Shown here: positions 309-63,828 of the stretch, one piece after another
Position numbering within the stretch: the stretch's first letter is position 1
Layout: every line of letters starts with the position of its first letter
DNA from: Oculina patagonica
Lineage: Eukaryota
NCBI RefSeq assembly: GCF_052425735.1
Contig: NC_135771.1
Span: 4,526,001 to 4,590,000, forward strand
Direction of reading: 5' to 3'
Length of the DNA: 64,000 nucleotides
Made by a program: the position numbers and the translations under genes
Notes under the pieces: generated by a model
What the model was told of the DNA's origin: nothing
Seen by the model: the letters and a program-made list of their open reading frames with translations, nothing else
Databases searched by the model: none

Positions 309-550
309 ACTGAGGTTTCCCCGAATTTTGTCCTTTGTGGATTATGGATTAATGGATTGCCTTTTGCAACACGATCAAGTGTGCTGTAAGTTTGTATCAG
401 TATTCATCAGTTTTCGGTGTTCGTTCTGTACTTTGGTATTTTCCTGTTTTGCATTTTAAGTTGAATCAAACAATTGCAAAAGAATATATTTATCAGACAA
501 CACAATCAATTTGAGGAATGTTTCCAAACAATAAAGAAGATGTCGCAAAC

Positions 551-754
551 CTTAAAACGCGTGCTTTGACCAGATCCGTATCTTCGGATTCTCATTCGGT
601 TTCCAAGAGGCGCACGTGACTTCTGGACAACACGTGGACTGGTCCTACGCCATGGTCCGTTGCACATGTCAATAGTGACCACGTCATTGTTCTCACGGAT
701 AGCCACACCACAGTTACACACCACTCGCCAGCAAGGCCAGATACGTGCATGCAC
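551..754 (-). CDS. VWD domain exon (VWDE-type)
   Basis: 204 nt; VHARIWPCWRVVCNCGVAIRENNDVVTIDMCNG, matching the VWDE-type FEVH.R.W.C..CNCG..E..D.V..DMCNG pattern. Confidence 0.88.
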
Positions 755-6700: not shown

Positions 6701-9700
6701 TCCCCACCCCCCCTAACACGGAGGAAAGCGTGTGAGATCGACAGAAAAAAAATCGATACTGATGACGTTGCTCTACAAAGGACCATGAAGAGTCTCTGAT
6801 TGGTTGTTGATTGGTTTCCAAGACACTGAACGGTATGAAATTTTACTGGTCGCATGGAGAGAACTAAGTTTAGGCAGAAAGCTCAAACAGGATGTTCAGA
6901 AAGCAATTTGGCCACTTACGAAGCAATACATGACCAAGAAAAGGGTTCTTACTTCAAAGTGTAACAAAAAGCATGCAGTTCCTACCTTAACTTTTCTGTT
7001 GATGGCGTAGAACTTGAACTTATTGCCATACAAGCCGTAGCTAATCTCGTATTTCTTCACCCATTGGTTGGCATCGTATCGACCTTGCGTTGCCACAGCA
7101 ACAACCCTTGTCACCTGACCAAGGTTTATCTGAAGCCACTGGAATACGTTGTTATATTTCGATGACCAGGCACCAGTGCCTCCGCGGTTGAGGATATTTA
7201 ATCGGGCTCTGTACGGACCATGTCGCCAATCCCACATGGATGATGACGTCATGGAGTACTTTGGAATACGCCCATCTTCAAGACCCAATGGAGCCCCGCA
7301 TGCACCTGTAGAGGAATAAATATACATTACGATTTCTGCTTTCCTTCATGCTAAGGGCTGCTTCACAAACAGTCAGCCCAAGCTTACAGTTTGAACTTCA
7401 TGTAGCCGTCATGGCGATTGTATTTATAGATTTTGTATGAGAATTTCACTTCAGTTCTCGAAATGCTAAATACAACAATGAGTGTGGAAATAAACTTCAC
7501 TTACCTCAATGTGGGGTTGTTTTTTGTGTCTTCTGTGTAATACAGGGTAATCTAGGGCCATTTGAGGCGAGTTTTTTATTTGGTCACTCTTCGGTGTAGT
7601 TTCCTCTAAGAGATCGTGTAGTTCCTAGAGAAAACTACACTGAAGAGTAACGAAATCAAAAACTCATTTCGGAACTGAAGTGAAATTCCCATACAATGGC
7701 TATAAATACAATCGCCTTGACGGCTACATGAAGTTCAAATATTGCAAGCTTGGGCTGCCTGTGGTTCACACGAGCGATGTGAACCACAGAAAAAGTACGT
7801 GTGAACTAGGACAACGTAATCGCTTTAAGTAAGTAAGTCACAGTCACAAACAAAGACATTTTCACACAAAGACAAACAAAGACATTTTCACACAGCAGTA
7901 AAGAAACGCCAACTTTCGTTACCTAGAGCACAGCCAAAGACCTCGACTCGCATGGAGATGTGACTTCTCCAGCCCCACGGGTGGAACCGAAGGAAGCGAG
8001 CTCGAATAGACGGGATGATTGAATTGTAAACTATAGTGTGTCTGTCACGGTTGCCACGGAAATACTGTAAATAAAAAGTCAAATGTCGTTAAAAAAAAAA
8101 CACAAGCTAAAAACAACTTAGGGAACAGGTTACTGATAACAAGATTCCAATCCCACAAAATTGGTTCTAAATTGTTTACATCTATCCCCACAAAAGTGCC
8201 AAAAGTGATATGAAACATGCACTCAAGATAGAGATGGTGACACACAGACTTCAGAATGTGGGTCTGATATGATGCATTAATATATACCGTAGAATTCCGG
8301 TTATAAGCCCTGGGCTTAAACAACTTCGTAAGGGTTTTTGGGTGGGCTTATAAGCGGAGGGGCTTATATTCGGGAGGGCTTATAAGCGGAAGGAAAAAAA
8401 CGTTTCGAAACGAGCCTCGGGAGTGTTGATCGAAATACGTTTTTAAGTTAAAAACGCACAAAAAAGCAACATTTAGCCCTGTTCAGTACTGTCATCCGGT
8501 AGAGGGGGGCTTATATCCGGGGGGGCTTATAACCGGATGTATTTTTTTGTTTCCAAGATGATGGGCCTATAACCGGGGGGGCTTTTAAGCGGGGGGGCTT
8601 ATAACCGGAATTTTACGGTATATGTCTTTCGTGCATAACAGACATAAAAAAACAGGATCGGACGATATGTCAAGTAAATAATCTGTCATGTAATTCAGTA
8701 ACTACTGTTTTATTAGTCACTTCGGGCAAAAGATATATCCTTCATTTACCTTTAGAGCGAGGGTAAGACTCAGAGAACATACCGAAAAATTGATGTGATG
8801 CTTCCCCCCCCCCCCCTATATATTTGAATTCTCATGCTCATAGCATTGTGCTCACTATATAAATCAAACGGTAATCTGAGTGGTCTTACTATCAAAAATA
8901 AATTTCTCACCTTGTCTCTGGAGTTCTTCCTGTATCTAGCAAAGTGTACTCCATCCACACTGGATGATAGGTAGTATGTGGTCACCCATTGGCTAGCCAT
9001 AGCTCTACCCTGGGTACCAACTCGTATTATCTTCGATATTCGGCCAAGGTCTAGTTGCAGCCATTGATAACGATTGTTGTGCCTATGAATTAAGTTGAGA
9101 AAATGTTATATAAAGATTGTTTTTTAAGAATTACTTTTATAATAAAAACGTTGAGGCTGACATTGGCTTATAAGTTTATACTAAAGTTTTAAATAAGGCT
9201 GAGAACGCGTCGGGCATCTCTGTGTTTCTTGCTTCTCGTGAAGACAAAGTAACCGACATTCTTGTATGACATATGCTTCTTAGTACAGCTTACAAGGCTC
9301 TTCGATATATTTCATGGTCTATCCGAATTCGCCTTACTAAAATGCTATACTACCTTAAGAACGTTTTCAGGTTCAACTTTCTTTAATAAAACGGGGGAGA
9401 GAGGTCCGTGTAACGGCATCTTAATCGTGTTCTGTGCCCTGAGAGATTTTCCCCGAATGCAAAGATCAATTTTGTTTACAAGGAAAAAACAATAAAAGGC
9501 TTGTATAACCTGGCTGACCAAGCGCTTTGGTATCTGCCCATGCGTCGTGCATTAAGCCTGGCTAAATATGGACCATGATATTTATCCCACATGGATGACG
9601 CTGTGATGGCCGAGTTTTTAATGCCTCCCGTCATCATGCCAAGTGGTCGATTGCACATATGTCCTGCAAAAATAAAATCATCAGTAAACATGATGATTCA

Positions 9701-12700
9701 CAATATTAAACTAAATAAAGACTCCAATGAGAAGGAAAGGTTCTTCGCCGCATAATAATGACAGCCGTTTCTGAATTAAAAATCTAGATGAACGCCAGTC
9801 AAACTACTTTTTATCTTGTTAGGTCTGTGGATGAAACCTTAGTGTACGACCATTTAAATGAAAGCTATTGAGCAGTACTTTCATGTGATACTGTTTATTA
9901 TGTCGTACAAGGTTGTTCTTACTTTTTAGTATGTGGATGAAACCCAAGTGTGTTACCATTTAAAAGAAAGCTAATGAGCAGTACTGTTATGCAGAGATAG
10001 TTATTTTTCCGAAGTGGAAATTTAAGAATTTTTTTTATTGTTGGACTCTTTGGAGGTAACTGGCATGCCTACCTTTGCTACAGCCGTAAACCTCAAGCCT
10101 CATAGAAATATGACCATGCCAGGTTCTGGGATAGAGTCTTATAAAGCGAGCACGGATTGGTGACCTGAAGCGACTAACAACTACTAATTGTCTCTCAGAG
10201 TTTCCTTGGAACACCTGTTTTGAAAAAAGTGAAAGTCAGCAATTAGAGCCATAAGGGTAAGAATATGTAAAATAACATTAAAATTCCATTTTAATGCAGC
10301 ATGTATAAAACGTTCTTGGAAAAAGCACGAGTATATTTACACTCACACCTCAAAGAATTGCTCGTACTTGTGCTTTATTATATCGATTAAGTCGAATTCC
10401 CACAAACAACCATCCCTCGATAATGGTCATCTCACGATAAAAGCAAGAATTTTTTGTATTGACAGCGCACACATCCATAGACTTTACTCCTTTCAAAACC
10501 TCCTCCATGCTCGTAGACTCAGGGATAGTTAGTGGGGGCGAAACGAAGTAATAAATAATAATAATAATAATTTATTTCTAGTGCATTACATTAAAAATCT
10601 CAATGCCCTTACAAGTAAAAATATTTAAAATTAACCCAGCAGAAATCGTAGCGACGAAAGTTATCAAGAAAGGCGGACTAGGTCGCTACGATTTCTGCCG
10701 GATTTATTTCTTCGTTTCGCCCCCACTAACTGCCCCCGGGTCTCCGAGGATGAACCTCCTCACAACCACCATTTGTGTGAAACGGCCAGCTAAACAGTCA
10801 ACTCTCTCTAAGGCAGACACCGTCTGGACCAGCTCAACTGTCCGTCTTAGAGAGGTGTCCGTCTTATAGGGAGCTTAGTTACAGTAAAATGACTAAAAAC
10901 GGCAGGGACGGGACCAACAGCAAGTGTCCGTCTTATAGAGGTGTCCGTTAAGAGAAAGTTGACTGTAATACTGCTCCCGGCTGGTCATTGTATAGCGGAC
11001 CAACCGTAAATATCTACACTTACGCTTAATAACTTCACACCATTAAAACAGGAAAAATATGCGCGCCAACAAAACAACAAATATGTTTATCAATGACATG
11101 AGCGTCTTTGTAAGACATACCCTTGTTCTTCCTCCTTCCTTGTAGAACCGGAAGTGGAATCCATTCATTCCGTAGGCAATCGTGTAGCTCTTGACCCACT
11201 GATTAGCGTCATATCTACCTTGAATTCCAACCTTTATCACGACTGCTCGGCTTCCAAGGTCAATCTGGAACCACTGGCGTCTGTTGTTGTAACGTGCAAT
11301 CCATGAGCCAAACCGTGAACCTCTGCGCATGGCATTCAGTCTGCCTTGATAGGCTGCATAGTGAGCATTGTAGATTGATGATGCTGTGAAGGAGACATCG
11401 GGCAAGACGGCTGTCTTCCGAGCCAAGTGGGATGTCACAACGCTCTGAAACAAAAAAAGATATTTGAGTGAACTATTGTAACCTTCAAAAAGTGGTAATA
11501 AGCGATAAACAATTTTAAACTTGTCCCCTTTAATTCAGCCCTTTTAAGGATAGCATCAAAACCATTATCTGACAGCCAGTGACAAATATATCTTAGTTAA
11601 TAAATGTATTCAAGATTTTAGGTCCAATTCTTAGGTGCAGTCCAACTAAAATGATTGCGGTAGAGTAGTAGTGGAGTGAATCTTATAGTCTTCGTCCTCG
11701 ATGGCTGCAGTTGATCTTGTTAGAACAGAATTTATATACCATAGCAGAACCCAAAAAGCGGATAACCAATTACTATGGCGTCCTTATAAAGGACGACAAA
11801 ACTTGTGGCCCCTGCATGCTGGAGACCACCAGTGTTCTCTTAAATTGACAGCACAATATGAACATCTTGTTATCTGGATTAAAATTATTAGACACTATCT
11901 TTGGTCGATACAATATTTAATAGGGCTTAACTCATTACTGAAACTGATGAGGGACACATGATCTTACTCACCTGGAGTACAGCCATGCAGTTCAACTCTC
12001 ATGGAGATATGTCTGTACCAGCCGCGTGGGTGAATACGGACACATCGTGCTACTATTGGTGGAGTCAAAGTGCGTGTGACGATTGAAGCCCCGTCATAGT
12101 TTCCAACAAAGTACTACAAAAGAAAAAAGAAAAAGGAACATTATATTACCCCAAGGAACCTATTACCGCCCAGGAAATTAAGGCTGAATAAAATAACCAC
12201 GCAATTTCTAAAGTTTGCGTCAATTTCGTTCGCACCTTAATTTCCTTATTTTATCTTTTTATCGTTTGATTTAAATTTAAAATTCTGTCTTATCGATTAA
12301 GTAAATTAAATAAAATATCAGTTTTTTTTCTGGAATTTAAAATCATGGAAGAGATCAAGTTGATCTTTTCCATGATTTTAAATTCCTCCTTGAGCGATAT
12401 GGTTTTGTTCTGTACTCTACGATTTCCTGTTATCATCAAATAAAATGTTCTCTTTCTGTTTGTATAGGGAGGTAAAGTCTGCATACGAGCCTAGTGCCCC
12501 ATCAGGCCAAAGTTTATCCCGGTTTCCGTAGCATGAAGCGACTAGAAAGCATTTCTACTCCCCTCTGGATGGGATGCTAGTCCATCGCAGGGTTACCCCC
12601 AGCATTAAATTCGCCGGTACCCATTTATACACCTGGGTAAAGAGAGGAACTGTGAGAGTAAAGTGTCTTGCCCAAGAACATAACGCAGTGCCCCGGCCAG

Positions 12701-15700
12701 GGTTCGAACCTGGACTGCTTAATCAGGAGTCTAGCCCACGAGCCATTGTATATAGGTAAAAAAAAAAATGCAAGATGACTTTTAAGCAAAGACACAAAAT
12801 AACATAAAAGCAGAAACAGCTCATACCTTCAGTCGATCTCTCTGTTTGTAAGGTACATAATGCACGCAATCCACACTGTAAGCAAGTGTATAACGCGTCA
12901 CCCACTGTTTAACAATCTTCCTTCCTTGAGTAGATATCATGGTTATCTTCAGGGTACGACCGATATCAACCTGTATCCACTGGTGATGGTTATTGTGCCT
13001 GGCTGCCCAGCCTCCCATGAACCGACCACCGCGCACGCGCTTCAGTCTTCCAAGGAATGGTGCATGGTAGCGGTCCCACATGGATGAAGCAGTAATCTGA
13101 CTATTTTTAATGCGACCGCTCTGGGCGCCAAGTGGATAGCTGCAAAGTCGTGTCAGTTCTGCAAAAGAATCATCGATTTATTTTCCTTCTATTAATAGAT
13201 CGACTGGCAAAACAAGCAGATTGACTTTGTCAATGGCAGACACATTTTAAAACAAACACCTCTTCAAGAAATATACCCACTAAGCCGCAAAATACAGTCA
13301 CCCCTCCAAGAAAGACACTTCTCGAAGGCAGACACTTTCACAATAATTATAAACAATTCTTTCACTCAGAAACGTTTCTAGAACAGACACACTTCTCAAG
13401 TGAGTTGACCAATAGGCAAACTGTACCTTTTTGACATCCGTAAAGTTCAGCCCTCATGGATATGTGGCTTCTCCAGGATTTGGGGTGAATACGGACATAC
13501 TGGGCCTTGAATGGGCGGAGCAAGGTATATGATACGATTGAATTTCTGTCTGAGTTACCACGGAACATCTAACAAGAGAAAGAGAAAAAACAGCTAAAAC
13601 AAAATGGTTTAGTGTTAACGTTCCGTGGTTTCAAAGGATAACTGATTGGTAACTATTGACTACTGAATTGCTTCACCCATTGAACAGATAAAAAGTGGTC
13701 GGAGTTTTCCCGTGTTAGGTTACACCAATTCTCAGCCACCAAATTTTTATAAGATAACGAACCGTCACGAAAACCTTAGCAAAAACAAATAACCCAGTTT
13801 CATTAACACAGTGTAAGTGGCGAGACATTGTCCTTCGGCAATTGAATTGCCAACAGAAAATCGCTCAGATAGCTGTTCGAAATAACAAACTGTAACGTAT
13901 GTAAATGTATGTGTCCTTTTCCCCAAGAAGTCAACTATTTGCAGGGCAACACACTTGTCACTGGCCTTGTGAGTGAAGTTCGGTCAGTTTTGACTTGTCA
14001 ACGTAATATAATGCTATTTGTAAACGTTAGGTCGTACAATTATGTAATGTTATTTTACAATTACAAAAACTCTTGACTGTTCATTTAAACCCTTAATTGN
14101 NNNNNNNNNNNNNNNNNNNNNNNNNNNNNNNNNNNNNNNNNNNNNNNNNNNNNNNNNNNNNNNNNNNNNNNNNNNNNNNNNNNNNNNNNNNNNNNNNNNN
14201 NNNNNNNNNNNNNNNNNNNNNNNNNNNNNNNNNNNNNTCACCCTGACTTTCCTCCTTTCCCTGTAGGCTGTAAATTTGGACCCATCTCCATATGACAACA
14301 CATACCGTGTCACCCACTGATGGGCGTCACGCCTTCCTTGTGTAGCGATTCCCGTAACACGTGCAATATTTCCAAAGTTTATCTGAAGCCACTGTCGAGC
14401 ATTATTTACACGTGCACTCCAAGAACGTATAGAGTTGATTCGTCCCAGCCACGGTGCCAAGTGGACATTGTAGTATGTTGAGGCACTGAGGGCTCCGTCT
14501 ACGATTCGTTTATCTTCCAAGCCAAGTGGAAGAGCGCAGCGTCCTGAGAATTGGGAATGTTAACAGATAATTTGTATTGTCATCCATAAAGTTTGCTTTG
14601 GATTAAAATAATTATTTAGAAGGCTAAAATATGGTTACAACTCTAAAAGGAAAAACCCGAACGTTTTTCGACTTAAATTAAGTCATCATCAGGGTGATGT
14701 GTTGCAATTTGTTTACATTTTATTAGATGGTCAACAAACTCAATAACAACAAAACTGGTATCAGACGAGAATTATTTTTACATCGCCTGCTGGCTCTAGT
14801 GTTGTCCAAGCCAAGACAAAAACGAATCGTAAGCGCCGAAAAAATATGGAAATAAGTGAACACGAGGCAAGATGGAGACAAGGTATGTATTCTGTATATA
14901 CATTTAAAATAGCGCTCAGTGCTAGCATATAATGCTGATTTTTGATGCTATGAAATGACTAGGAATATCGCTTCTTCTCCAACAAACCGAAAACGTAAAA
15001 CAGTACAAACTGAACTACTAAGGGACAAAAAATGTTTACCAGCCGGACAGCCATTGAGTTCAACTCTCATGGAGATGTGTCGGTACCATCCCTTGGGAAG
15101 AATACGTATAAACCTGGCGCGAGCAATTGGGAAAAGTCTGTGCTGCTTGATAGTGTTCCTGTCACGGTTTCCAGCGAAATACTAATGAAATAAAGCAGAA
15201 AGAGAAACAATGTTTTTATTAAAATAAAATCAAAAAGGAAGCAAACTATCATTACTTACTTTGTGAGCGTATCACTACTTTGTACAGTATTACTGAGAGA
15301 TTCAACAGGCTGGGTTAATCGTTACGATTAATTAACGCATTTAGCTAAACAAAACATGACAGCTAAATACAGGTACGTTTAAATGTTTAAATTGGAAGTG
15401 TTGTTGACAACATTTTGTGTTAAAAAAAACGAAACGCATGTTGCAAACCATTTATTGTTTGATTAGACGAGAGAACTGTTTGTTCACTGGTACTAATGGC
15501 AAGATAAAAGCCCAAATGCAAGGTTTGCAACAACAAACCAAGCTAACTGCCACCTTCTTCGACAGCCGTGGCACTAGCTGATAAATTCACCACGTCATAC
15601 GCTGAAAGGAGAAAAACTGTGTAGCCTTAATATATAACTCCAAGGCCAGCTTAGCCAGAACCAGTTTTACGAAACGATGCATATAAAATATAAACTGACG

Positions 15701-20820: not shown

Positions 20821-20863
<43 letters not shown>

Positions 20864-53800: not shown

Positions 53801-56800
53801 GAAATTCGAGGTGTTTGGATAGCTGATAAACACTGTCTCGGGTGTTTGATATACGGGGTATCTTCTCAATCGAAACAAAAACTACGGAGTAAACAGAGAA
53901 ATAAAATCGTAAAAAAATGTCCTAATTAAGACCGGGTATCCAAACCTTCTTCACAGTACGTACCATTGAAAAAATATTTTAGATCGGTCCTTGTAAACCA
54001 TTGGAGCTCTTGCAGTCTAACATGTTGGATCATGTTTTAATGACAAATCAGATATATAGACAGAAGCTTCTAACAATTTTTGGAAAAACAGCTATTGTTA
54101 ACATAAAGATTTTAATAGTGCAGCTTACAAGCCTAAAACTATTGTCCATTTAACACTAACCAGCTCTGCATCCATAGATTTCCACTCTCATTGAGATATG
54201 ACTTCGCCATCCCCACGGGTGAATTTTGATAAACCGAGCATAAACTGCAGGATTAAGAGCTTGGATTTTGATGCTGTTTTGATCATTGTTGCCACGGAAA
54301 GTCTGAAAAGAAATCATTCCACATGAATCATACATGTAAATACTTGCAACTCAGAGCACAACATTAATGAAAAAAATTGCTTCTGTGTTACAGGTTTCTA
54401 CAGTTCTTTCTCGTTTCCATGTTAAAATCCAAATTCATTTTTTTTCATGTTTCTCTTAAAACCTACGTAAAACCTTTCATCTGATTTTTATTTAGCAAAA
54501 AACCTTTATCGCCGTTCTTGATGCACCTCAGGAAAAATAGACGAACGCACAAAAAAACACCCTTGAAACCACGCATGCACAAAACCACACCCTACTCTAG
54601 TCATAATGTAGCCCTTGATTATTTCACTTGGAAATATCCAACTTCCATGGTCGCTATTCTTTGCAAGGTTCTGTATTTATCACATTTTCTCACCTTGTCA
54701 CTGTTTTTGAATCGATACACTTGCCAATGAATGCCATCTAAACTTGAGGATACTCGATAGTATGTCACCCACTGAGCAGCGTCCTGTCTCCCCTGAGTGG
54801 CTATCTTTGTGATTTTCATTGCTCGACCGAAGTCCATCTTAAGCCACTGATTTTTGTTGTTGTGCCTTGCGCACCAGGCTCCAACATATCTACCTCTCTT
54901 GTGGTGACCCAGTCTCCCAAGTCTAGCCGCATGGTAAACGTTGTATTCTGAGGATGCCGTGATTCTGTTGTTTCGGAGACGACCATTTTGTAATCCCAAG
55001 GGAGTGCTGCACAGTGCACCTGGAAAAACAATATCAATATCATTAACTTTTTAACTCTTTTTATTACTGTTGGCAGACATTGGTCGTTTTCACACTAGAA
55101 GACAGACAAATCGTCTCGACGGACGAGTCGTCTGACGATTTGTTCGTCTAGTGTGAATTTAAGACGGATTTTGGACGACTTGTCCCTCTCGATCACCAAG
55201 TCGTCCTCAAAAAATAGTCATCCTAGACGGACAAATCGACGGACAAATTCAGACGACTTGAACATCTAAAAACGTGTCCGACCCGTTTTCATACAAAGTT
55301 GATTTGTCCGTCTCAGACGATATGTCTGTCTAGACGATTTGTCCGTCTCCAGTATGAAAACGGCCATTAAGCCTATACCAACAAAAAAGCAAATTTGTAT
55401 TGTGCCATTTCAACTTGTTAATGATTGCAGATTTGTAATGATTGCCAAATTGAGGTAGCTGGGATGGCCCATTGGTCATGTTGAATTCCACATTCAATCA
55501 GCCAAGAGTGTTCAGAGTCATTTAGCACAATGTGAGGTTCCAGAAAAAATCCATACCCACACCACAGTGACTTACTGGAAATTCCTTTGGGGAGGGGGTC
55601 TCAAAAGCCAAAACGTTTAAAGGAAAGTATGAAACTAAACTGGAATTTCCAGTGGAGTGAGGGAGGGGAAGGGTGGGATCGACAATCGTATTTAGGGCAA
55701 TCTTTTATTTTTGCACATTTGGTTAGCTCACTAAGGCTACCGACGGCTTTCTTCCAAAAGGAATTAAAAACTAAGAAACTTACTTGTACAGCCAAAGAGT
55801 TCAACTCTCATTGAAATCCAACCGTACCATGTTCTTGGATGGATTCTGACATAAGCAGCACTGAATGGCTTCAAGAAACGGTGATATACTACAGAATGTC
55901 TGTCACTGTTTCCTGAGAAAACCTACCACGGAAAAATAATAATCTGTCATTAATATTGTAAGCTAATATAAAAAAAATTATAGTATGGTTAATGTTTAGA
56001 CTTGTTCTAGCCAGTGTGAATTTTAAAATAAATAGATGAATGAGACAAACTATATACAAACCTAAACCTTAACATTGTTACAATATCTGTATCTCGAAAA
56101 GGTCTTTTTGACAGAAGACAAGCGAAACGTTTTAGAAACAACACAACACTTTTAAGGAAGACTATTTAATAGTCATTATCAGTCCAAGAAAAACAACAAT
56201 TTTAACGTGTTTAAACGTGCCGTTTCACCATGTTGATTTAAAACTCTTTAAAGTACTCACAATGACATAGTTATGCACTCTTTTGCTGCCTTGTCACAAA
56301 TTAGCAACGTAATTCTAAGTTTATTTTATTTATAGTCATTTGAAATTCAACTTATTAATATATTTCGTAACTGACTTCTCACAGTAGGGACTGTCGAACC
56401 ATGTCTTTTTCAAAACTCAAAAGAGATGTGTTGTGTTGTTTCAAACCCTTTACAGCAAATATTGCATGTAAGTGACAGAGCAATTTGATACGAATTCTCG
56501 TATGACAACTGCTGCCCTTTAAAAGCATGAGAAAGTACTGGTGAATAGTTTCAAATCTGCTAACCAAACGATGCTCATATCATAGTAGTTAGAATATTCA
56601 TTAGCCTATACTTATTAATTAACAATTGCATTCAAAGTCTTGTCCAGAAGACAACCTTGTACCCACGCCAAAATCAGCTACTTAAAAAACGCGTTTTTAC
56701 GCAACACTCTAGTTATTACGTGTAAAGATTTATCATACTCTTACCTTGATGCGTCGGTTTTCTCTGTAGGGAACGTAGCTTACACCATCTCGACTATATG

Positions 56801-59800
56801 TCACTATATAGGTCTTCACCCATTGGTTGGCATCTTGTCGGCCTTGTGTTGCTATTCCTTTAAATTTTGTTATATCACCGAAATTAACCTTGAGCCACTG
56901 TTTGGTATTTCTAGTGCGTACACTCCAGGACCAGCGGTGGTTCAATCTGCCATGCCATGGTGAAAGGTGGTGGTTGTAGTAGGTAGAGGCTGTTATATCT
57001 CCTGGAGTGAGACGCTTGTCTTCTAAACCAAGAGGCATGTTGCAACGGTCTGCAAAGTAAGATGAACAAAATGCAATGAACAAGTAGTAAAAGTTAAGAC
57101 TAAAGGAAAATTTACAAAGAACCAGAGAAGGGACATCCTGGGTACCAGAGGATTTTTCTCGCACGCAGCGGATTACTCTTCAGCGGCCGACATGACCGAC
57201 ACCAGAAGCTGTGCAAGAAAAACCTTTGTCACCAAGGGTAGAGAAGGGAAGAAAGGAACAAACAAATGGACAAACAAATAAGCCTGCCTCTCCAGAAAGG
57301 GGTGAAAGGAGGGACGGAGGGAATCAGGAAAACATTTCATTTAAACTAGAATGACTAACGTAGAATAAGTTTGGGGACTATCATTAAGAACCAAGATTAT
57401 TATTAAAATAGTGGTATTATTAATGGTTGTATGAGAAAAACATCAAGGCCAACGATGGCAACCAATAATAATGTGATTAAACCTGGGAAACAGTATTGAT
57501 AGTCATGTCTAGATAAATAAAGTAAAAAAAAATTATTCACACCTTCAACGCATCCATAGAACTCCACTCTCATAGAGATGTGTTTATACCATCCCCAAGG
57601 TCGAACCTGAATAAACCGTGCCTTGATTGGTGGATAGAACCTGTGCTGTACCACTGTGTTTTGGTCTCGGTTACCTTGGAAGTACTAAATAAAAAGAAAC
57701 AACGAAAATTATAAAGGACACATAGCTAACTTCAGAAACATTATTTATCAGGAATCCTTGACCATAATGAGAAGGAACATTCCGGTTGGTCCAAATTTTG
57801 CAATATCGTAAGCTTAGGTGAACCACGCCCAAAATAGCTTAGCTGACCCAGTTTGGGTTTTTTGAAGCATTTTGCAAAAGAAAGCAAACTTCATAATAAG
57901 TGGAAGCGTTTTTTTCACATGTCTGGCCAATGATTTTGGTTTAACATCTGGGAAAGAAGCTTCAACTTCACGATGCTCAACACAGCTATGCAAATTTGCA
58001 GATAATAGATGCCTTATGTATCAGCAAAGTTATATTGTAGAAGAGCCCTTAATTGCAAAATGAATTTGAACACAACGAATTTTTCCCCGATACAAAACAC
58101 ACACTAGCACAATACAACATCTACATATAAAGGTAAATACAACAAACGTACCTTTCTATTGCTGTTTTCTTTATACTCAGCGAAATTTGCACCATCTTGA
58201 CCGTATTTAACGAAAAACCGTGTCACCCACTGACGTGCGTCTTGTCTTCCTTGAATAGCAATCTTCACTACACGCATGGAGCGTCTGAAGTCCACTTGTA
58301 ACCACTGGTAGTGATTATTGTGGCGTGATGACCACGCCCCAGTCCTCGCGCGGCTTCTACGCCAATACAGTCTGGCATTACTTGGTCCATGATTTCGATC
58401 CCACATGGAAGATGCTGTGATTTGATTGGCACGAACGCGGCCATTTTTCATTCCTAAGGCTTTGTCGCATCTTGGGCCTATTGTGGGAAGAAAAGGCATG
58501 TGTGAGTATTGTAACTAAACTTAGAAAGTTATAGAAATATATATTTAGATACAAGCAGTTTATTGAAGTTCATTTTAGAATCAAAATTAATACAAAAACA
58601 AGAAAAGGATAAAAGAAAAGAATTCATAGCTTAATTGATTAGCTTTGCTGATCTTGATCACCACTATTTAAACATGAAACCTGTGACATTATTAACCCCC
58701 TATCTAGTCTTTCTTAGTTGTGTGATTGCGCGCATAAAGGCAAGAAAGATAAACAAATTTAAGAAATTGACACTTATGATTACATTATATATACATAAAC
58801 CTACCAATGACGCAACCATAGAGCTCAACTCTCATGGAGATCCAGCTACGCCAGGTGACAGGATGTATCTTGAAGTAACGACCCGCCAGTGGTCGCATAA
58901 ATCGGTGCCTTACGACTACATATCTGTCAAAGTTACCTTGGAAAATCTGGGAGATAAAAAAATAGACCATAAATCCACAAGTTTTACTCCTTTCTTATTT
59001 CAAGCCTCAAAGTATAATAATTGATAAACCCCCTTCTCTATTATCAGCACATAAAACAGCCTCCACTGAAAATTATATAAACCCCCTGGCTGTCCCTACA
59101 ACCCTCTCTAACAAAATCAAAAGTGAAAGAAAAAAAAGTAAAACATGTTTTGTAAAAACTTATTCTAAAATACGCTTAGTCTGGTCTTCTTAACCAGTCC
59201 AGAGTTTGAAATATAAACTCTTCTTGCTGCCTTTTTACTTACAATTTTATTGCTATACACTTTTTTATGTAAATTTTGAGAATTTGGTGAAAAATCAAGA
59301 TGAAAATCCCTCCTTGTGACCTGTCTCCTTGGATGGAAGTAACGTTTTTAACTTACATTTGTCTTAGAGCGGTTTTTACTTGAGTGTGGAAAGTAATTCG
59401 CATTTGCTTTGGTTTTGCATAACTACGCTTAGTGATTGGTTTAAAAAAAACTTGCGCCACTTTCGCAGCCAATCGAAAGTATAACCAAAAGCAATTGTGA
59501 TTCGCGTGCGCCCTTTTCCCGCGTATTTGCTTGGAGTTTTGATTGATTAATTCGATTGTCTGTATTCTTTGTGATTGGCCTGAGTGATAACTTTGGTTTT
59601 GGTTTTACGACACTCAATCGAAAATCGCGCTATATCCTTTTCCAGAACACTAACTAACCTTTGTTCTTCTGTACTCCTTATAGGTCACAAACCGGAATCC
59701 CTTGACACTATAAGATACATAGTAACTTGTGACCCACTGGTCGGCGTTCTGTCGACCTTGAGTAGCAACTCGTGACACACGAGTAAGCCCTCCAAAGTCA

Positions 59801-62800
59801 ATCTTGAGCCACTGGCGTTTGTCATTTCGTTTCGCATACCACGCCCCTCCAAGCCTACCCACACGTCGCTGGTGGAGCCTGGCGTTTCTTGGTGCACCGT
59901 AGAAGTTGTAATATGAGGAAGCCGTGATGAGTTGGGCAGGGACACGGCCATCTTCCAATCCAAGAGGAACGTCACACCTACCTTTATTAAAGAAATGAAA
60001 ATCAGTTAAGTGGACATCAAGGAATATAAAGAAATTCTCCACTTAATGAGAACAATAATTTATTGGACAATTTTTGAAGACCAGATTTATAGGAGATTAA
60101 CTTCAGCATGTTCAAGTAGTTGAACTTCATGTAAACAGCAATCTGACCATCCGAAAAAGATGTTACATGTACCTCAACCAGATTGCAGTTTCTACGAAAA
60201 CAATTAGACAACGAGCCTTTGCTTTCTATAAACGATAATGAACTCGGCTTCGCCTCGTTAACTATTCGCTCAAAGAAAATTCGGATTCGTACTCTTGTTC
60301 TCAATAAATAGCGCACATTAAGGTCTTTTTACTTACTCCATGCGCCAGCAAACAGCTCAAGTCTCATTGAGATATGTGAACGCCAGCCACGTGGGACGAT
60401 TTTAACGAATCGTGCATACAAGGGAGGGTTGAATGAGCGAGTTTGAACACCATTTCGATCGTAATTTCCTTTGAAAGTCTAAATACAGTACAACAAAAAG
60501 GAAAACAAACAACAGTCAAACAAATAAAAGAGAGTATAGAAAAGTAAAACAAGTTTACGTTTCCCTAAAAATTTACCTGACTTGCAAGATTAATTATCAT
60601 TTCTGCAACCATTTCAATCTAGTCAAAAATCTAATCATCCTTACTTGCCCATGACTTTCAAAATTTGTGCTTTTATAATGTTACACAACAGAAAAGTGCC
60701 AGAACTGGTTACAAGTGCTATGACCGACGTGTATACCTTCCTCATTGTACTGCAATAAGCTCTTTGCAGAACATGGTCATGGGACAAGGGGTAGTGCAAA
60801 ATGATTCCCAGAAACACAAAGAGCACGATGAAATAAGTAAGGTTGCCCTTTTCGAGACTGCTGATGCTTAAACGTTAGATTTTATAGTAGTTTAAAGGCT
60901 TTAAAAGTTTAAAGGATTTGTATGGAAAGAGTTGCTTGATGGCAAGGCTTGCCCTCCAGTATACAAATCCTCAAATTTCAAAAACATTCAAACCACTATA
61001 AAACCTCACACTTACGCATCAGCAGTCTCAAAATTAGCAACCTTTAATTTCATCATGTTCTTTTCATTTTTGGCAACCATTTTGTCCTACCGCATACTTT
61101 TATAATTGACAAGATCACGTGATCGGTTTTCTGCAAAGGGCCTATTACCCCCAAAATCATCTGCTTTGAGGAGAACACTGCCTTTGTATGAAATGCACAG
61201 CTGTAAATTTCGTTTTACGATTTGACATATTTTATTACTGTCAACCAAAATGAACACAAAAAACACTTACCCTGATGTAATCCCACCAATATGTGACTCT
61301 AGAATAGTGAACTCCATCTAAACTGTAGTAAACATAATAGGCAGTCACCCATTGGTCTGCATCTTGCCGTCCTTGTGTTGCGATACCTGTGACCTTGGAT
61401 GACCTTCCTAAGTCAATCTTCAACCACTGGTTGTGGTTGTTATGGCGGGAAGCCCATGAGCCGATGTAACGACCCTGCTTTGCAATATGCAATCGGGCAC
61501 GGAATGGAGCATGGAATTTGTCCCATTGGGATGAGGCGGTCATGGCAGCATTCTTAATTTTACCACTTTGAATACCTTGGACTTGGTCACAGAATCGTTC
61601 TAAGGAGAGAATTGAAAAGGATATTGCATTTCACAAATCGCTGCTTTTTGTCTTTAGACTACAGGGCTTTCATTAAGATTTTAGTGTAGAGCAAAGAGCA
61701 ATAAAAGAAACTGACATTATCTCCCCTTCACAGGAGCTGCACGAACGTTATCCGGCAAATCACGAGAGGATACCCGCCGGAGCTCTGGTGGGTGCCGGGT
61801 CTTACTGAAAGCCCTAGAGACAAAATAACTTACTAGAAACATTTTTCAGCGTGAACTTTAACCGCTGCAAAAGCCTTACAACCAACATTTGACTTTTTTA
61901 ATTTTAAGGCTAGTTGCAAATGTAACTATTGCATTTCATAGATTTTAGCGACTTATTTTTAGCATAATTATCATTTTTCAAGTTTTTAATTCTGGGTGTA
62001 ACATTTAAAGTGGGTGGGTTAAAGTGGGTTAAAAATTTTTTACTCATAAGATATTGTAATCTAGCTATTTTTATGTAATCTAGCTATTTTACAATATCTA
62101 GATATTGTAATCTAGCTATTTTACATGCTTGAGTGAAATAATTGATCGTCAAGAAATCCCGCTCGCAAATTGTACTGTGATAATTACATAATACACCCAA
62201 ATTTGTCTGAGTTGAGTAACACAAATAGAATTTAGCCGGAAACATCGTCGATTTCGTTTTAAACGCGTTACTTTTTTTAATTTTCATGTAATTTCATTGA
62301 GCTTACCTTTATACCGACAACCGTACAATTCTACTCGCATGGCAATATAACTGCGCCAAGTCTTGGGATGGATACGTAGAAAACGGGCCTTGATTGCTGG
62401 GATTATCTTGAAAGAAACTGTGTTGTAGATATCGTAGTTACCACGGAAAACCTAACAAAAAAGGAAATCATGGTAAAACCGAGTTATTCAGTTTTCAAGC
62501 ACGCACAAGCACATCTAAACATATATGCAGGTCCTGATTGCAAAGAACTTTCAGAAAAAAAATCAAAACTGGGGCTTCAGTGGGATTGAAACGCATGACC
62601 TGTGTGATATACTAGTGTAGTGTTCTACTGTAACTACCTTGAATAATAAAGCAAGTTCATTTTAAGTAATTTTCACTTTTGTGCCGAAAGTAGTTCGCGT
62701 TTGGTTTAGTTTTGCATTACTACGCTTAGTAATAGCATAGTTAATGGATGGTAAGAGAAACCTGCGCTGCTTTCTTAACCATTCAGAAGTAAAACTAAAA

Positions 62801-63828
62801 CCAATCAGTGTTTTCCCGCGCTTCATGCCGGCATATTTTGCTTCAAGTTTTGATTGGTTCAGTGGACTGTCCGTGTCCTTCATGATTGGCAAAAAATGAT
62901 TACTTTGGTTAGAGTTTTACAACACTGGATTGAAAACCGCTCTATGTAAACACAATAACTATAAACTGGTGATAATGTAAACGTTTCATTTTCATATCAC
63001 CAAGCATGCTGCAGTACCAGAAAGAAAAGCTGACAAACCAACAAGTACACCGTGTGTGGAAAAAACAGACAATCGGTTTTAAACAACTCTAAACAGCATC
63101 TCACCTTAATCCTGCCATAAGCTACATATGGTCTAAAGCGCAGACCCTTCGCGCTATAGGACAGGGTATAACTTTTCACCCATTGATGGGCTTCTCTCCG
63201 TCCTTGTGTAGCGATTCCTTTGATGATACTCATCTGCCTCAAGTCAATCTGTAGCCACTGCCTGTTGTTTCGATATTTTGCTACCCAGGCCCCTGTTCGT
63301 CCATGGCCGGCGTAGATGTTAAGACGTGCTCGGTCAGGTCCGTGATTGTAGTTATAAGAAGACGAGGCTCGTAGATGACCCGACAGGATACGACGGTCTT
63401 CCATACCAAGCGGCATAGTACATTTGTCTGTAAAAGCAAACATCCAATATTGATTTTAGGCGTGCAAACCAAATGTCAAATTTGAATTGACATTTTTAAA
63501 ACCTTTTTTAGAACAAATGTTAATACAAAGGTGATAGAAAAAATGATTATAAGAAAAATCTAAGCAAAGAATCTGAATTTAAAACAAACTTTCCCAAGGA
63601 TGCACATGAAAAGAATGATAATGCTAATGATGAGATGTTTGGGGGTTTTAATGCTTGTCACAAAAGTTACTCTCTTTGCTTTGTACCTGTTAGGCAACCA
63701 TAGAATTCTAATCTCATGGAGATATGTCTGTACCATCCCCATGGACGAACGCGGACGTAGCGACATCTGAGGGCAGGGATGAAAGGATGACTGACAACTG
63801 TATTCTGGTCTCGGTTGCCTGAGAAATA
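551..63828 (-). CDS. Partial giant multi-exon gene: >=35 tandem discoidin (F5/8 type C) domains followed by a VWDE-like Ig-like + VWD module; 5' and 3' ends outside window
   Basis: 80 exons with GT/AG boundaries and compatible phases. Repeated motifs C..PLG..DGR/NGRI..ASS..ARL..GAW..QWLQ.D..TQGR..QWV..Y.SYS.DG and F.GN.D..ARF.R.HP..W..HISMRVE.YGC. No start or stop exon seen between modules. Confidence 0.9.
1159..1225 (-). CDS. VWD domain exon
   Basis: 67 nt, phase 2-0; YYDILRNAGTYVMVKSLRRNFE. Confidence 0.85.
1456..1529 (-). CDS. Start of von Willebrand D domain
   Basis: 74 nt; VVTSNRGAKKCQGTGDPHYRTFDN, matching the VWD signature C...GDPHY.TFD. Confidence 0.9.
2112..2429 (-). CDS. VWDE-like region, exon 3
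   Basis: 318 nt; VHPKTLSM...LPIRC...PVRDF...FWKGYRLPPIR. Confidence 0.85.
2895..2934 (-). ncRNA. Minimal hammerhead-ribozyme-like motif (Penelope-type remnant)
   Basis: TCCC-CTGATGA-A-GACTTAAGTTTAAGCC-GAAACGTT-GGGA. Confidence 0.55.
3177..3263 (-). CDS. VWDE-like region, exon 2
   Basis: 87 nt, phase 0-0; VACRVRARYSSGKDWTMNTRSKDLFTGIK (resembles the VWDE S..FFAGIK segment). Confidence 0.8.
3633..3737 (-). mobile_element. tRNA-derived SINE head fragment
   Basis: Reverse-strand tRNA-like A/B-box sequence; related fragment at about 62555-62630. Confidence 0.5.
3797..4023 (-). CDS. VWDE-like region, exon 1
   Basis: 227 nt, phase 1-0; DYPVISRPVVRAVIKPGRGCSKVALRCYF...GFKAGTT. Confidence 0.8.
4059..4200. 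other. Assembly gap
   Basis: 142 Ns, preceded by (TCAA)n. Confidence 0.99.
4350..5697 (-). CDS. Discoidin D35 (last of the array, extra intron)
   Basis: Exons 5574-5697, 4910-5117, 4350-4491. Confidence 0.9.
6326..7305 (-). CDS. Discoidin D34
   Basis: Exons 6986-7305 and 6326-6467. Confidence 0.9.
6487..6640. repeat. (CAGT/CAAT)n microsatellite
   Basis: Tetranucleotide tandem repeat. Confidence 0.95.
7370..7761. mobile_element. Foldback MITE
   Basis: TIRs of about 60 bp (CAG.CAGCCCAAGCTT..TTTGAACTTCATGTAGCCGTCA.GGCGATTGTATTTATA) plus an internal hairpin. Confidence 0.75.
7923..9663 (-). CDS. Discoidin D33 (type 8-like, extra intron)
   Basis: Exons 9510-9663, 8911-9082, 7923-8064. Confidence 0.9.
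8287..8618. mobile_element. Tc1/mariner-like MITE
   Basis: TIRs CCGTA.AATTCCGGTTATAAGCCC, TA flanks, internal GGGCTTATA repeats. Confidence 0.8.
10073..11444 (-). CDS. Discoidin D32 (type 7-like, apparent +1 frameshift)
   Basis: Exons 11121-11444 (324 nt; 323 expected) and 10073-10214. Confidence 0.82.
10506..10752. mobile_element. MITE with 9-bp TSD (Mutator-like TSD size)
   Basis: TIRs containing GTTAGTGGGGGCGAAACGAAG; TSD AACCTCCTC at 10497-10505 and 10753-10761. Confidence 0.8.
10795..10965. mobile_element. CAGTCAAC-ended mariner-like MITE family
   Basis: TIR CAGTCAACT...AGTTGACTG, internal GTGTCCGTCTTA repeats; relatives at 24257-24339, 25531-25702, 28946-29121, 35312-35440. Confidence 0.75.
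11972..13158 (-). CDS. Discoidin D31 (position 6 of the unit)
   Basis: Exons 12827-13158 and 11972-12113. Confidence 0.9.
12471..12745 (-). mobile_element. tRNA-derived SINE
   Basis: Reverse-strand tRNA-like head (GGTTCGAACC B-box), core GTGTCTTGCCCAAGAACA and GGTACCCATTTATACACCTGGGT tail region. Confidence 0.7.
13427..14543 (-). CDS. Discoidin D30 (type 5-like)
   Basis: Exons 14242-14543 and 13427-13568. Confidence 0.9.
14100..14237. other. Assembly gap
   Basis: 138 Ns. Confidence 0.99.
14655..14695 (-). ncRNA. Second minimal hammerhead-like motif (degenerate)
   Basis: ACC-CTGATGA-T-GACTTAATTTAAGTC-GAAAAACGTT-CGGGT. Confidence 0.45.
15040..16191 (-). CDS. Discoidin D29 (type 4-like)
   Basis: Exons 15866-16191 and 15040-15181. 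Confidence 0.9.
16239..16515. repeat. Two degenerate copies of an interspersed repeat
   Basis: GTTCA..GGAT..TTATCCACTGGATAAATCGCTAT..GATAGT.ATTTATCCGG present twice. Confidence 0.55.
16697..18098 (-). CDS. Discoidin D28 (type 3-like, extra intron, apparent +1 frameshift)
   Basis: Exons 17919-18098 (180 nt; 179 expected), 17187-17330, 16697-16838. Confidence 0.82.
16922..17228. repeat. Tandem duplication (about 160 bp) including the D28 exon 3' end and donor
   Basis: GATAAGCAAGTGTTAAGTA.TTCGAGA..ACGTTACCTTGATTACTCT..TTTCTGTGTA..AACTAGAGCC present twice. Confidence 0.85.
18513..19628 (-). CDS. Discoidin D27 (type 2-like)
   Basis: Exons 19303-19628 and 18513-18654. Confidence 0.9.
20400..22399 (-). 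CDS. Discoidin D26 (type 1-like, extra intron)
   Basis: Exons 22221-22399, 21159-21302, 20400-20541. Confidence 0.9.
23124..24122 (-). CDS. Discoidin D25 (type 8)
   Basis: Exons 23797-24122 and 23124-23265. Confidence 0.9.
24763..26151 (-). CDS. Discoidin D24 (type 7, extra intron)
   Basis: Exons 26001-26151, 25258-25429, 24763-24904. Confidence 0.9.
25531..25702. mobile_element. CAGTCAAC MITE copy
   Basis: Alignable by eye to 10795-10965; TA flanks. Confidence 0.75.
27029..28667 (-). CDS. Discoidin D23 (divergent type 6)
   Basis: Exons 28360-28667 and 27029-27170. Confidence 0.9.
27495..27746. mobile_element. MITE/foldback
   Basis: TIRs ATCCACCGTA..GAAAAAGATGGC / GCCATCTTTTTCCATACGGTGGAT. 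Confidence 0.65.
27907..28326. mobile_element. Non-autonomous DNA transposon with CCCGGG(G)n ends and 8-bp TSD
   Basis: TSD AACTTCTG at 27899-27906 and 28327-28334; internal inverted ATACGGGGAGGCT motif and AAAGGGGTA repeats. Confidence 0.8.
28946..29121. mobile_element. CAGTCAA-ended MITE
   Basis: TA-CAGTCAA...TTGACTG-TA. Confidence 0.7.
29307..29850. mobile_element. PIF/Harbinger-like MITE
   Basis: Near-perfect TIR of about 45 bp, GGGCCTGTTTACATGATTCCGGAATGACTTTCATTCCGGAACGA. Confidence 0.8.
29891..31424 (-). CDS. Discoidin D22 (type 5)
   Basis: Exons 31135-31424 and 29891-30032. Confidence 0.9.
30928..31050. repeat. Palindromic interspersed repeat
   Basis: AACAGTTATTCCACTCGCGCTTG.TGGATATGA...TCATATCCAACGCGCGTTCGTGTAATAACTGTT. 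Confidence 0.65.
32106..33216 (-). CDS. Discoidin D21 (type 4)
   Basis: Exons 32891-33216 and 32106-32247. Confidence 0.92.
33891..34906 (-). CDS. Discoidin D20 (type 3)
   Basis: Exons 34584-34906 and 33891-34032. Confidence 0.92.
35520..36538 (-). CDS. Discoidin D19 (type 2, WWD)
   Basis: Exons 36210-36538 and 35520-35661. Confidence 0.92.
36801..37641 (-). CDS. Discoidin D18 (type 1)
   Basis: Exons 37319-37641 and 36801-36945. Confidence 0.92.
38054..39539 (-). CDS. Discoidin D17 (type 8)
   Basis: Exons 39214-39539 and 38054-38195. Confidence 0.92.
38367..38708. mobile_element. Kolobok-like MITE
   Basis: TTAA flanks, AG..CT termini, TIR AGATGA.TTCCAGTCCGTACTGCGCA. Confidence 0.75.
40776..41831 (-). 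CDS. Discoidin D16 (type 7)
   Basis: Exons 41509-41831 and 40776-40917. Confidence 0.92.
40993..41171. mobile_element. Kolobok-like MITE
   Basis: TTAA-AGGAGCAATGTCA ... TGACATAGCTCCT-TTAA. Confidence 0.65.
42076..42208. repeat. Hairpin repeat
   Basis: TATTGACCAAGCTTGTTCGGTCAAGATAGCTGGATA ... TATCCAGCCATCTTGACCGAACAAGCTTGGTCGATA. Confidence 0.7.
42299..43232 (-). CDS. Discoidin D15 (type 6)
   Basis: Exons 42907-43232 and 42299-42440. Confidence 0.92.
43437..44468 (-). CDS. Discoidin D14 (type 5)
   Basis: Exons 44164-44468 and 43437-43575. Confidence 0.92.
44982..46029 (-). CDS. Discoidin D13 (type 4)
   Basis: Exons 45704-46029 and 44982-45123. Confidence 0.92.
46667..47641 (-). CDS. Discoidin D12 (type 3)
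   Basis: Exons 47319-47641 and 46667-46808. Confidence 0.92.
48288..49124 (-). CDS. Discoidin D11 (type 2, WWD)
   Basis: Exons 48796-49124 and 48288-48429. Confidence 0.92.
49475..50222 (-). CDS. Discoidin D10 (type 1)
   Basis: Exons 49900-50222 and 49475-49619. Confidence 0.92.
50557..51499 (-). CDS. Discoidin D9 (type 8)
   Basis: Exons 51174-51499 and 50557-50698. Confidence 0.92.
51678..52009. mobile_element. PIF/Harbinger-like MITE
   Basis: TTA TSD; TIR AGGCCTGGCT.AA.TAGGAA. Confidence 0.75.
52393..53494 (-). CDS. Discoidin D8 (type 7)
   Basis: Exons 53172-53494 and 52393-52534. Confidence 0.92.
53708..53950. repeat. Interspersed repeat (inverted relative near 22850-23063)
   Basis: Shared ATTTTTGAC.AA.TTCGAGGTGTTT core. 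Confidence 0.6.
54161..55019 (-). CDS. Discoidin D7 (type 6)
   Basis: Exons 54694-55019 and 54161-54302. Confidence 0.92.
55081..55366. mobile_element. Harbinger-like MITE
   Basis: TIR TGG.CGTTTTCA.ACT.GA.GAC.GACAAATCGTCT. Confidence 0.7.
55784..57049 (-). CDS. Discoidin D6 (type 5)
   Basis: Exons 56745-57049 and 55784-55922. Confidence 0.92.
57543..58477 (-). CDS. Discoidin D5 (type 4)
   Basis: Exons 58152-58477 and 57543-57684. Confidence 0.92.
58805..59981 (-). CDS. Discoidin D4 (type 3)
   Basis: Exons 59659-59981 and 58805-58946. Confidence 0.92.
59365..59632. mobile_element. TAGAGCGGTTTT-ended MITE family
   Basis: Copies also at about 38938-39199, 52876-53127, 62665-62944; shared GAAAGTAATTCGC.TTTGCTTTGGTTTTGCA and GATTGG motifs. 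Confidence 0.75.
60337..61599 (-). CDS. Discoidin D3 (type 2, WWD)
   Basis: Exons 61271-61599 and 60337-60478. Confidence 0.9.
60755..61147. mobile_element. Degenerate foldback element
   Basis: Inverted arms GAGACTGCTGATGC/GCATCAGCAGTCTC, GGATTTGTAT/ATACAAATCC, TTTGCAGAA/TTCTGCAAA. Confidence 0.65.
62307..63427 (-). CDS. Discoidin D2 (type 1)
   Basis: Exons 63105-63427 and 62307-62451; DKCTMPLGMEDRRILSGHLRASS. Confidence 0.92.
63687..63828 (-). CDS. Discoidin D1 (type 8), second exon only
   Basis: 142-nt exon YFSGNRDQNTVVSHPF...HISMRLEFYGCLT. Confidence 0.9.

Follow-up and report, generated by a model that had tools for sequence, protein, structure and literature searches.

The window analysed here, a 64,000-nucleotide stretch of Oculina patagonica DNA (GCF_052425735.1, contig NC_135771.1, forward-strand positions 4,526,001 to 4,590,000; G+C 39%), carries on its minus strand a single transcribed gene encoding 34 complete F5/8-type-C (discoidin) domains, D2 to D35, as well as exon B of a further domain, D1, and the gene extends past both window ends. 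We confirmed that these domains form an eight-domain super-repeat, which proved stronger than first described. Domain numbers D1 to D35 are those of the first-pass annotation; exons were defined from reading frames and splice signals, and coordinates were derived via the reverse complement (rc = 64001 − window). Each domain is encoded by an exon pair, with exon A usually 305–329 nt long (typically ~323) and exon B 139–145 nt (typically ~142). AG..GT was found at 75/75 exon borders, and introns are in phase 1 at domain boundaries and in phase 0 between A and B. Every domain module is symmetric (phase 1-1) with a total length that is a multiple of three, so that any exon pair could be skipped or lost in frame. 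The linkers between domains are short and of fixed length, 4–6 residues. Exon A alone matched Pfam PF00754 with 55.7 bits in D10 and 67.5 bits in D11 (cut-off 28.2), covering profile positions 3–81, while exon B covers positions 87–127.

Unit I (D2–D9, types 1–8) occupies 50557–63427 in 16 exons and is followed on the minus strand by unit II (D10–D17, types 1–8) at 38054–50222, again in 16 exons and with the lengths of unit I. Unit III (D18–D25, 23124–37641) has the unit I/II lengths in D18–D21, an exon A of 290 nt in D22 and of 308 nt in D23, and in D24 an exon A interrupted by an additional phase-2 intron. Unit IV (D26–D33, 7923–22399), of the full units the most diverged, has extra exon-A introns in D26, D28 and D33. 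Next come D34 and D35 (4350–7305), positions 1 and 2 of a fifth cycle, which are strongly diverged; exon A of D35 is split by an extra intron of its own. At the other end lies exon B of D1 (63687–63828), a type-8 exon belonging to the last domain of a partial upstream unit, the exon A of which is beyond the window end. In a second coral (European Nucleotide Archive ERZ25067879), of which we compared two haplotype contigs exon by exon, the equivalent exon B stands after a type-8 exon A and before the D2 orthologue. The first-pass annotation had assigned 34 domains to the span 7923–63427, but this span holds exactly D2–D33, or 32 domains in four units, and the array continues on both sides of it.

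The periodicity is visible in exon lengths. Exon A measures 323, 329, 323, 326, 305, 326, 323 and 326 nt in D2–D9 and exon B 145, 142, 142, 142, 139, 142, 142 and 142 nt; both series are identical in D10–D17, and units I and II each total 3,717 nt, or 1,239 codons. The identity of these strings had been claimed at first pass and is exact; D18–D21 repeat them too, with drift from D22 onward. Also present are the type motifs that were said to recur with period eight: type 1 MEDRRIL.GHLRASS in D2, D10 and D18, though degenerate in D26; type 2 WWD in D3, D11 and D19; type 3 ARLHQRR in D4, D12, D20 and D28; type 4 GP.C in D5, D13, D21 and D29; type 5 a short WSWS loop in D6, D14 and D22, though RSWS in D30; and type 7 YGPW.ARLQ.RN in D8, D16 and D24. 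The motifs fade across D26–D33.

All-against-all comparison of the domains gave a mean amino-acid identity of 61.9% at an offset of eight domains, 59.5% at 16 and 52.4% at 24. The offset-8 value lies above those of all offsets that are not multiples of eight, which reach ~45–50% when even and ~41–45% when odd. It was not attained by any of 20,000 random domain orders (z = 12), nor by any of 20,000 shuffles that kept the odd/even alternation (z = 8.7), and in 31 of 32 cases the best match of a domain belonged to its own type. The modulo-8 label required 8 changes on the maximum-likelihood tree, against a minimum of 7 and a shuffled mean of 24.7, with 0/200 shuffles as low. The tree thus resolved the domains into clades by position modulo eight, as the first-pass annotation had predicted, and clustering by adjacency or at random was not seen. 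Its deepest branch (98/98) separates types 1, 3, 5 and 7 from types 2, 4, 6 and 8. An intermediate period of four found no support, offsets 4, 12 and 20 giving 48–50%, no better than offsets 2 and 6; the tree held only a weak grouping of types 4 and 6.

Inside most types the units branch in the order ((I,II),III),IV. Same-type identity is 70% between units I and II and 53–56% between unit IV and units I–III, and types 1 and 3 are unusually alike across units I–III (69–84%). Along the array, identity between domain i and domain i+8 is 55–83% for D2–D13 and 42–66% from D14 on. Between same-type domains of units I–IV, synonymous divergence (dS) was above 1 or not computable and non-synonymous divergence (dN) was 0.11–0.49, with dN/dS of 0.07–0.30 where it could be estimated. 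Equivalent introns of different units had no similarity; the sole intronic matches were dispersed repeats at non-equivalent positions.

The second coral holds collinear one-to-one orthologues of D2–D35. At 34/34 positions the orthologue has the higher identity, with a mean of 86% versus 64% for the best same-type paralogue. Upstream of D2, this coral has further domains of types 5, 6, 7 and 8, preceded by a lone type-4 exon B, and downstream of the array it has open reading frames (ORFs) matching VWD, Vwde and EGF_TEN. Across many coral assemblies we found more than 120 type-1 exon fragments (72–95% identity), with two or three to a contig in several cases; one fragment is annotated as 'coagulation factor V-like [Orbicella faveolata]'. 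In a 50%-representative protein library there was no full-length orthologue, only other poly-discoidin proteins and single-exon fragments. A distant genome, ERZ26692694, assumed to be a coral, showed the order 6B, 7, 8, 1, 2, 3, 4, 5 at 60–78% identity, and no unit-level orthology with it was seen.

The sea anemone Nematostella vectensis has, at the EDO48085 locus (DS469515.1:376121–408369), 25 consecutive domains with best-hit types running 5, 6, 7, 8, 1 and so on to 5. We placed 64 domains in a joint tree of 156 columns, in which the domains of the anemone and of ERZ26692694 were labelled by position only. The position labels required 10 changes, compared with 45.4 when shuffled, and 23 of 24 anemone domains fell in the type clade predicted by their position. 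Several well-supported pairs joined particular units across species, namely D23 with Nv18 (99/84), D30 with Nv25 (95/97) and D25 with Nv12/Nv20 (96/89). Coral and anemone domains are 51% identical when of the same type, 44% when the types differ but the parity agrees, and 39% when the parity differs. No insertion or deletion that breaks the register was found in the four genomes, including the 25 consecutive anemone domains. Since Nematostella shows the same type order and the same type clades, sequence comparison dates the eight-type cycle to before the split of stony corals and sea anemones, and part of its multiplication probably predates that split as well.

Among solved structures the best relatives of these domains are the factor VIII and V C domains, neuropilin b1/b2, lactadherin and retinoschisin. 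An AlphaFold model of an adjacent type 8-type 1 pair from the Nematostella homologue, rather than of the window's own protein, has a predicted local distance difference test score (pLDDT) of 95.3 and a predicted template-modelling score (pTM) of 0.72. Single C2 domains of factors VIII and V superpose on this anemone model with template-modelling (TM) scores of 0.88–0.92 (target-normalised) at 1.3–2.3 Å, and the model has the eight-stranded beta-barrel with loops ('spikes') at one end. As a pair it differs from factor VIII C1-C2 and from neuropilin b1b2 (TM ~0.5, root-mean-square deviation 11–16 Å). Columns that are constant within types and different between them lie mostly in the first two loops after ASS and in the first loop of exon B, and these loops form the ligand-binding end of the discoidin fold. 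Coral and anemone have loop signatures in common: a six-residue deletion in type 5, SSSYNYNHGPDRARLN..GRTGAW in type 1 and YYGPWSARLQARN in type 7. This pattern fits eight types that would be eight differentiated binding faces. The idea that the odd and even kinds correspond to factor VIII C1 and C2 was rejected, as both score higher against C2 than against C1 (exon A; type 1, 49.3/35.5 bits; type 2, 48.9/40.2 bits). A cysteine near each domain end, the N-to-C disulfide pair, is present in 33 of 34 domains. In D3, exon B (60337–60478) has lost the C-terminal cysteine, reading ELFAGAW for ELYGCPW, which leaves the N-terminal cysteine unpaired; in ERZ26692694 and in Nematostella, a single type-1 domain has lost its two cysteines together.

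Beyond D35, the gene continues on the minus strand into a C-terminal non-discoidin module at 503–4057, in which exons conserved with the second coral (tblastx, 86–92% identity) encode a putative VWD domain (GDPH start at ~1449–1538) and then a putative Vwde-type region. In the second coral the corresponding ORFs matched PF00094 VWD (weakly), PF26129 Vwde and PF25024 EGF_TEN (weakly). The window has conserved counterparts of this tail, including GDPHYRTFD; a Pfam scan of three window tail ORFs (506–754, 2100–2447 and 3761–4030) returned no match. The first conserved C-terminal exon (3770–4057) adjoins an assembly gap at 4059–4200, which separates it from exon B of D35, and its 5′ border may therefore fall inside the gap. 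The protein would presumably be secreted and very large, with ~38 or more discoidin domains followed by a VWD/Vwde/EGF tail. At the other end of the second coral's array, neither the exon A missing from its first domain nor a signal-peptide exon turned up in the adjoining 2.8 kb upstream, or in a further 18 kb, which contains only G-protein-coupled receptor genes; these form an intronless seven-transmembrane receptor cluster on both strands (L003 735–6256, L012 14519–19580).

Transcription was followed on 12150–18149 by aligning contigs of four runs, three RNA-type and one DNA-type. Spliced contigs from three runs agree with the predicted exon borders: one RNA contig joins D28 A2, D28 B, D29 A, D29 B and D30 A exactly as predicted, and another (X1 record 2) joins D30 B to D31 A. 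An assembly gap at 14100–14237 lies between exon A (14242–14543) and exon B (13427–13568) of D30. The run of Ns starts 4 nt past the exon A donor (exon end 14242, GTGA, then N) and so falls in the intron between A and B; the two exons (302 and 142 nt) are in frame, and the orthologous intron of the second coral has no extra exon. RNA contig X4 record 14 covers 14242–14448 and 77 further letters, with depth fitting 13492–13568. Judged by the aligned pieces and the depth bins, and with this joint absent from the joints listed, the RNA appears to be spliced from 14242 to 13568 straight across the gap.

Two single-base frame breaks interrupt the array on the minus strand, and X was placed at each of them in the domain sequences. 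The +1 frameshift in D28 exon A, one extra base at 18047–18048, is private to the assembly, as an error or an allele, because none of the four runs, three of RNA and one of DNA, has the letter at 18047; the orthologue reads through in a single frame. In D32 exon A, a +1 frameshift is caused by an extra C in a GCCC run (11400–11403), and the orthologous exon of the second coral is open across this point in one frame (92% identity over 110 amino acids).

Five domains of the 3′ half have extra introns in exon A: D24 (25258–26151), D33 (8911–9663), D26 (21159–22399), D28 (17187–18098) and D35 (4910–5697). One site, in phase 2 within the K/R codon that follows W.A, is common to D24 (type 7) and D33 (type 8); a second, in phase 0 after QWLQ, is common to D26 (type 1) and D28 (type 3); and D35 has its own. 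All five splits occur also in the second coral, similar splits are found in several Nematostella domains, and the same-type domains of units I–II are without them. The extra introns were either gained in parallel at fixed sites or lost from the young blocks. Intronic elements are scattered. A ~250-nt repeat (71–75% identity) sits right after exon A at 62670–62945, 59371–59633, 52878–53117 and 38944–39194, that is, in the A|B introns of D2, D4, D8 and D17, which are not equivalent modulo eight. The D33 intron between A2 and B holds at 8280–8630 an element with inverted ends ccgtagaattccggttataagcc ... ggcttataaccggaattttacgg and internal GGGCTTATAA(C/G)CGG repeats, which looks like a miniature inverted-repeat transposable element. 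At 12350–12750 and 16150–16349, contig depth rises to thousands to millions in 4/4 runs with many aberrant joints, and these intronic stretches are high-copy interspersed repeats. One haplotype of the second coral (ctg73752, L007 11898–16953) carries a 5–6 kb insertion in the D19 A|B intron that is not in the other (L006), with large transposon-like minus-strand ORFs of 234, 517 and 380 amino acids.

We propose that the array is an ancient eight-type cassette that grew by in-register duplication of blocks, has been held by purifying selection and serves as a multivalent extracellular binding or adhesive scaffold, a reading to which we give a probability of about three in four. Its history would have three layers. 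The oldest would be two kinds of domain alternating along the chain, one in the odd places and one in the even; the next, the emergence of the eight types and their fixed order, before the stony coral and sea anemone lineages parted; and the last, repeated duplication of eight-domain, 16-exon blocks, likely by unequal crossing-over between units. Such duplications would leave the reading frame intact, given that all exon pairs are phase 1-1, and the pairing of like with like during recombination would preserve the register. The youngest coral copies would be three blocks, each running from type 5 to type 4 and together made up of the partial unit upstream, D2–D17 (units I and II) and D18–D21, and these young blocks would have been placed in front of the older part, D22–D35. 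The fall in i/i+8 identity from D14, together with the partial unit upstream and the second coral's lone type-4 exon B followed by type 5, suggests that the blocks broke at the type 4 | type 5 junction. Since duplication, each position has persisted as a distinct orthologue, maintained by purifying selection. As for function, each type may present different ligand-binding loops on the scaffold, and the VWD tail would provide processing or multimerisation.

Several observations weigh against this proposal. The adhesive or binding role is inferred from the domain families only. In the joint tree Nv16, D34, D35 and D31 fall outside their type clades; unit-level orthology between coral and anemone depends on a small number of well-supported nodes over 156 columns, and the sequences of the anemone domains are approximate, having been pieced together from tblastn matches. 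The two-domain arrangement of the modelled pair has a pTM of only 0.72. Finally, neither a signal peptide nor a first exon was found, and the array of the second coral opens with a half domain.

The strongest rival holds that the array is a molecular ruler or periodic docking code, as the first-pass annotation had suggested, in which the eight types would set a structural register for a periodic extracellular partner and selection would act on the period. The eight-type cycle would then itself be the functional unit, docking onto a periodic structure in the mesoglea, mucus or attachment layer, for example a fibrillar collagen or a lattice of glycans; we consider both statements unlikely. The rival gains from an order that is unbroken in the four genomes, including the 25 anemone domains, even though every pair could be lost in frame, and from type-specific loops conserved over very deep divergence and linkers that are short and of fixed length. 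However, in-register unequal crossing-over accounts for changes by whole units without the period being selected. Between units, same-type domains are only 53–70% identical, unit IV is without several type motifs, the array begins and ends mid-cycle, and the partner is so far hypothetical. The periodicity is, by sequence comparison, ancient and preserved, and it may possibly measure or match a partner. It need not be a selected property, because unequal crossing-over that changes whole units, combined with purifying selection on each domain, suffices. If the ruler were real, it would be the equivalent, outside the cell, of the rulers titin and nebulin, with a register maintained from before the coral/anemone split.

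An improbable alternative treats the phase 1-1 exon pairs as optional cassettes, the eight types being alternative binding heads picked by splicing. All modules are indeed symmetric, multiples of three and skippable in frame, and an older Nematostella gene model (P0012) joins non-adjacent domains, which is probably a prediction artefact. Against this, the RNA contigs join consecutive exons without skipping, from D28 A2 to D30 A and from D30 B to D31 A, bearing in mind that contigs drop rare variants. Harder still to sustain is concerted evolution, by which gene conversion would keep same-type domains alike and the pattern would be silent on age. The 69–84% identity of types 1 and 3 among units I–III would suit it, but at each of the 34 positions the other coral's orthologue is nearer than every paralogue, introns of different units can no longer be aligned and their dS has reached saturation, and the same unit order recurs within most types of the tree. 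A recent segmental duplication, or an artefact of assembling a repetitive region, might draw on the two assembly gaps and two single-base frameshifts in the array, but can practically be dismissed given units that differ by 30–47% in protein with unrelated introns and the same structure in independent assemblies of other species and in RNA.

The array, dated to before the coral/anemone split and conserved position by position between two corals, offers a clean natural example of a giant modular gene growing in register. It would also supply eight differentiated discoidin faces whose ligands can be assayed one by one, and Nematostella is genetically tractable, so that removal of one domain could be compared with removal of one unit. 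Our literature searches found no earlier description of a comparably regular super-repeat in an extracellular lectin-type array, and no paper on discoidin super-repeats, on EDO48085 or on a cnidarian poly-discoidin and VWD protein. The result also corrects automatic annotation, in which fragments of this gene are labelled 'coagulation factor V-like'. Proteins so named have been counted as haemostatic toxins in cnidarian venom surveys, those of anemones among them (PMC10893224), and this classing of them takes the discoidin domain alone as its ground.

Coagulation factors V and VIII have the same domain family as this gene, a close single-domain fold and a similarly short inter-domain linker. 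They differ in that the odd and even kinds are not C1 and C2, and the predicted pair geometry is different. In the ~110 kb orthologous locus, Pfam annotation of the called ORFs, which covers part of these ORFs, gave only F5_F8_type_C, VWD, Vwde and EGF_TEN matches and none of the A (cupredoxin, multicopper-oxidase fold) domains of factors V and VIII.

Adhesive proteins are nearer in composition. Sea-urchin nectin (Paracentrotus lividus, 984 amino acids, six tandem discoidin domains) is among the strongest sequence matches, at 41–47% identity per domain, and is likewise a chain of directly abutting discoidin domains, with an extracellular adhesive role as a protein of the extracellular matrix (PMC10057474). 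Unlike the coral gene, it has six domains, no reported super-repeat and no VWD tail; orthology with nectin was rejected, as there is no type correspondence and the architecture is different. The combination of discoidin, VWD and EGF domains is recurrent in temporary marine adhesives (PMC10057474). Sea-star Sfp1 and related marine glue proteins resemble the coral protein, with its putative VWD/EGF tail, in bringing these three domains together in very large secreted proteins. The same combination occurs in the very large secreted clot proteins hemolectin and hemocytin of insects. Proteins of the Sfp1 and hemolectin types have few discoidin domains among many modules, whereas here ~38 stand in a row before a short tail. 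Other poly-discoidin proteins, namely Pocillopora verrucosa XP_066029356, Acropora millepora LOC114977630 and one of Branchiostoma, have 8–19 repeats with near-uniform best-hit identities, which suggests homogeneous arrays in a different regime, perhaps recent or concerted.

Super-repeats are a hallmark of the ruler proteins of muscle, with 7- and 11-domain super-repeats in titin and a 7-module one in nebulin. The likeness to these proteins drawn at first pass stands in that domains resemble their counterparts in other units more than their neighbours, and in that other species share the pattern, but as a formal analogy only. The coral array has the same form of higher-order periodicity, conserved between distant species, and would likewise have grown by block duplication. 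It differs in being built of discoidin beta-barrels rather than Ig/FnIII or nebulin modules, in a periodic partner that is so far hypothetical, in being presumably extracellular rather than sarcomeric, and in a period of eight that is laid over an odd/even pair.

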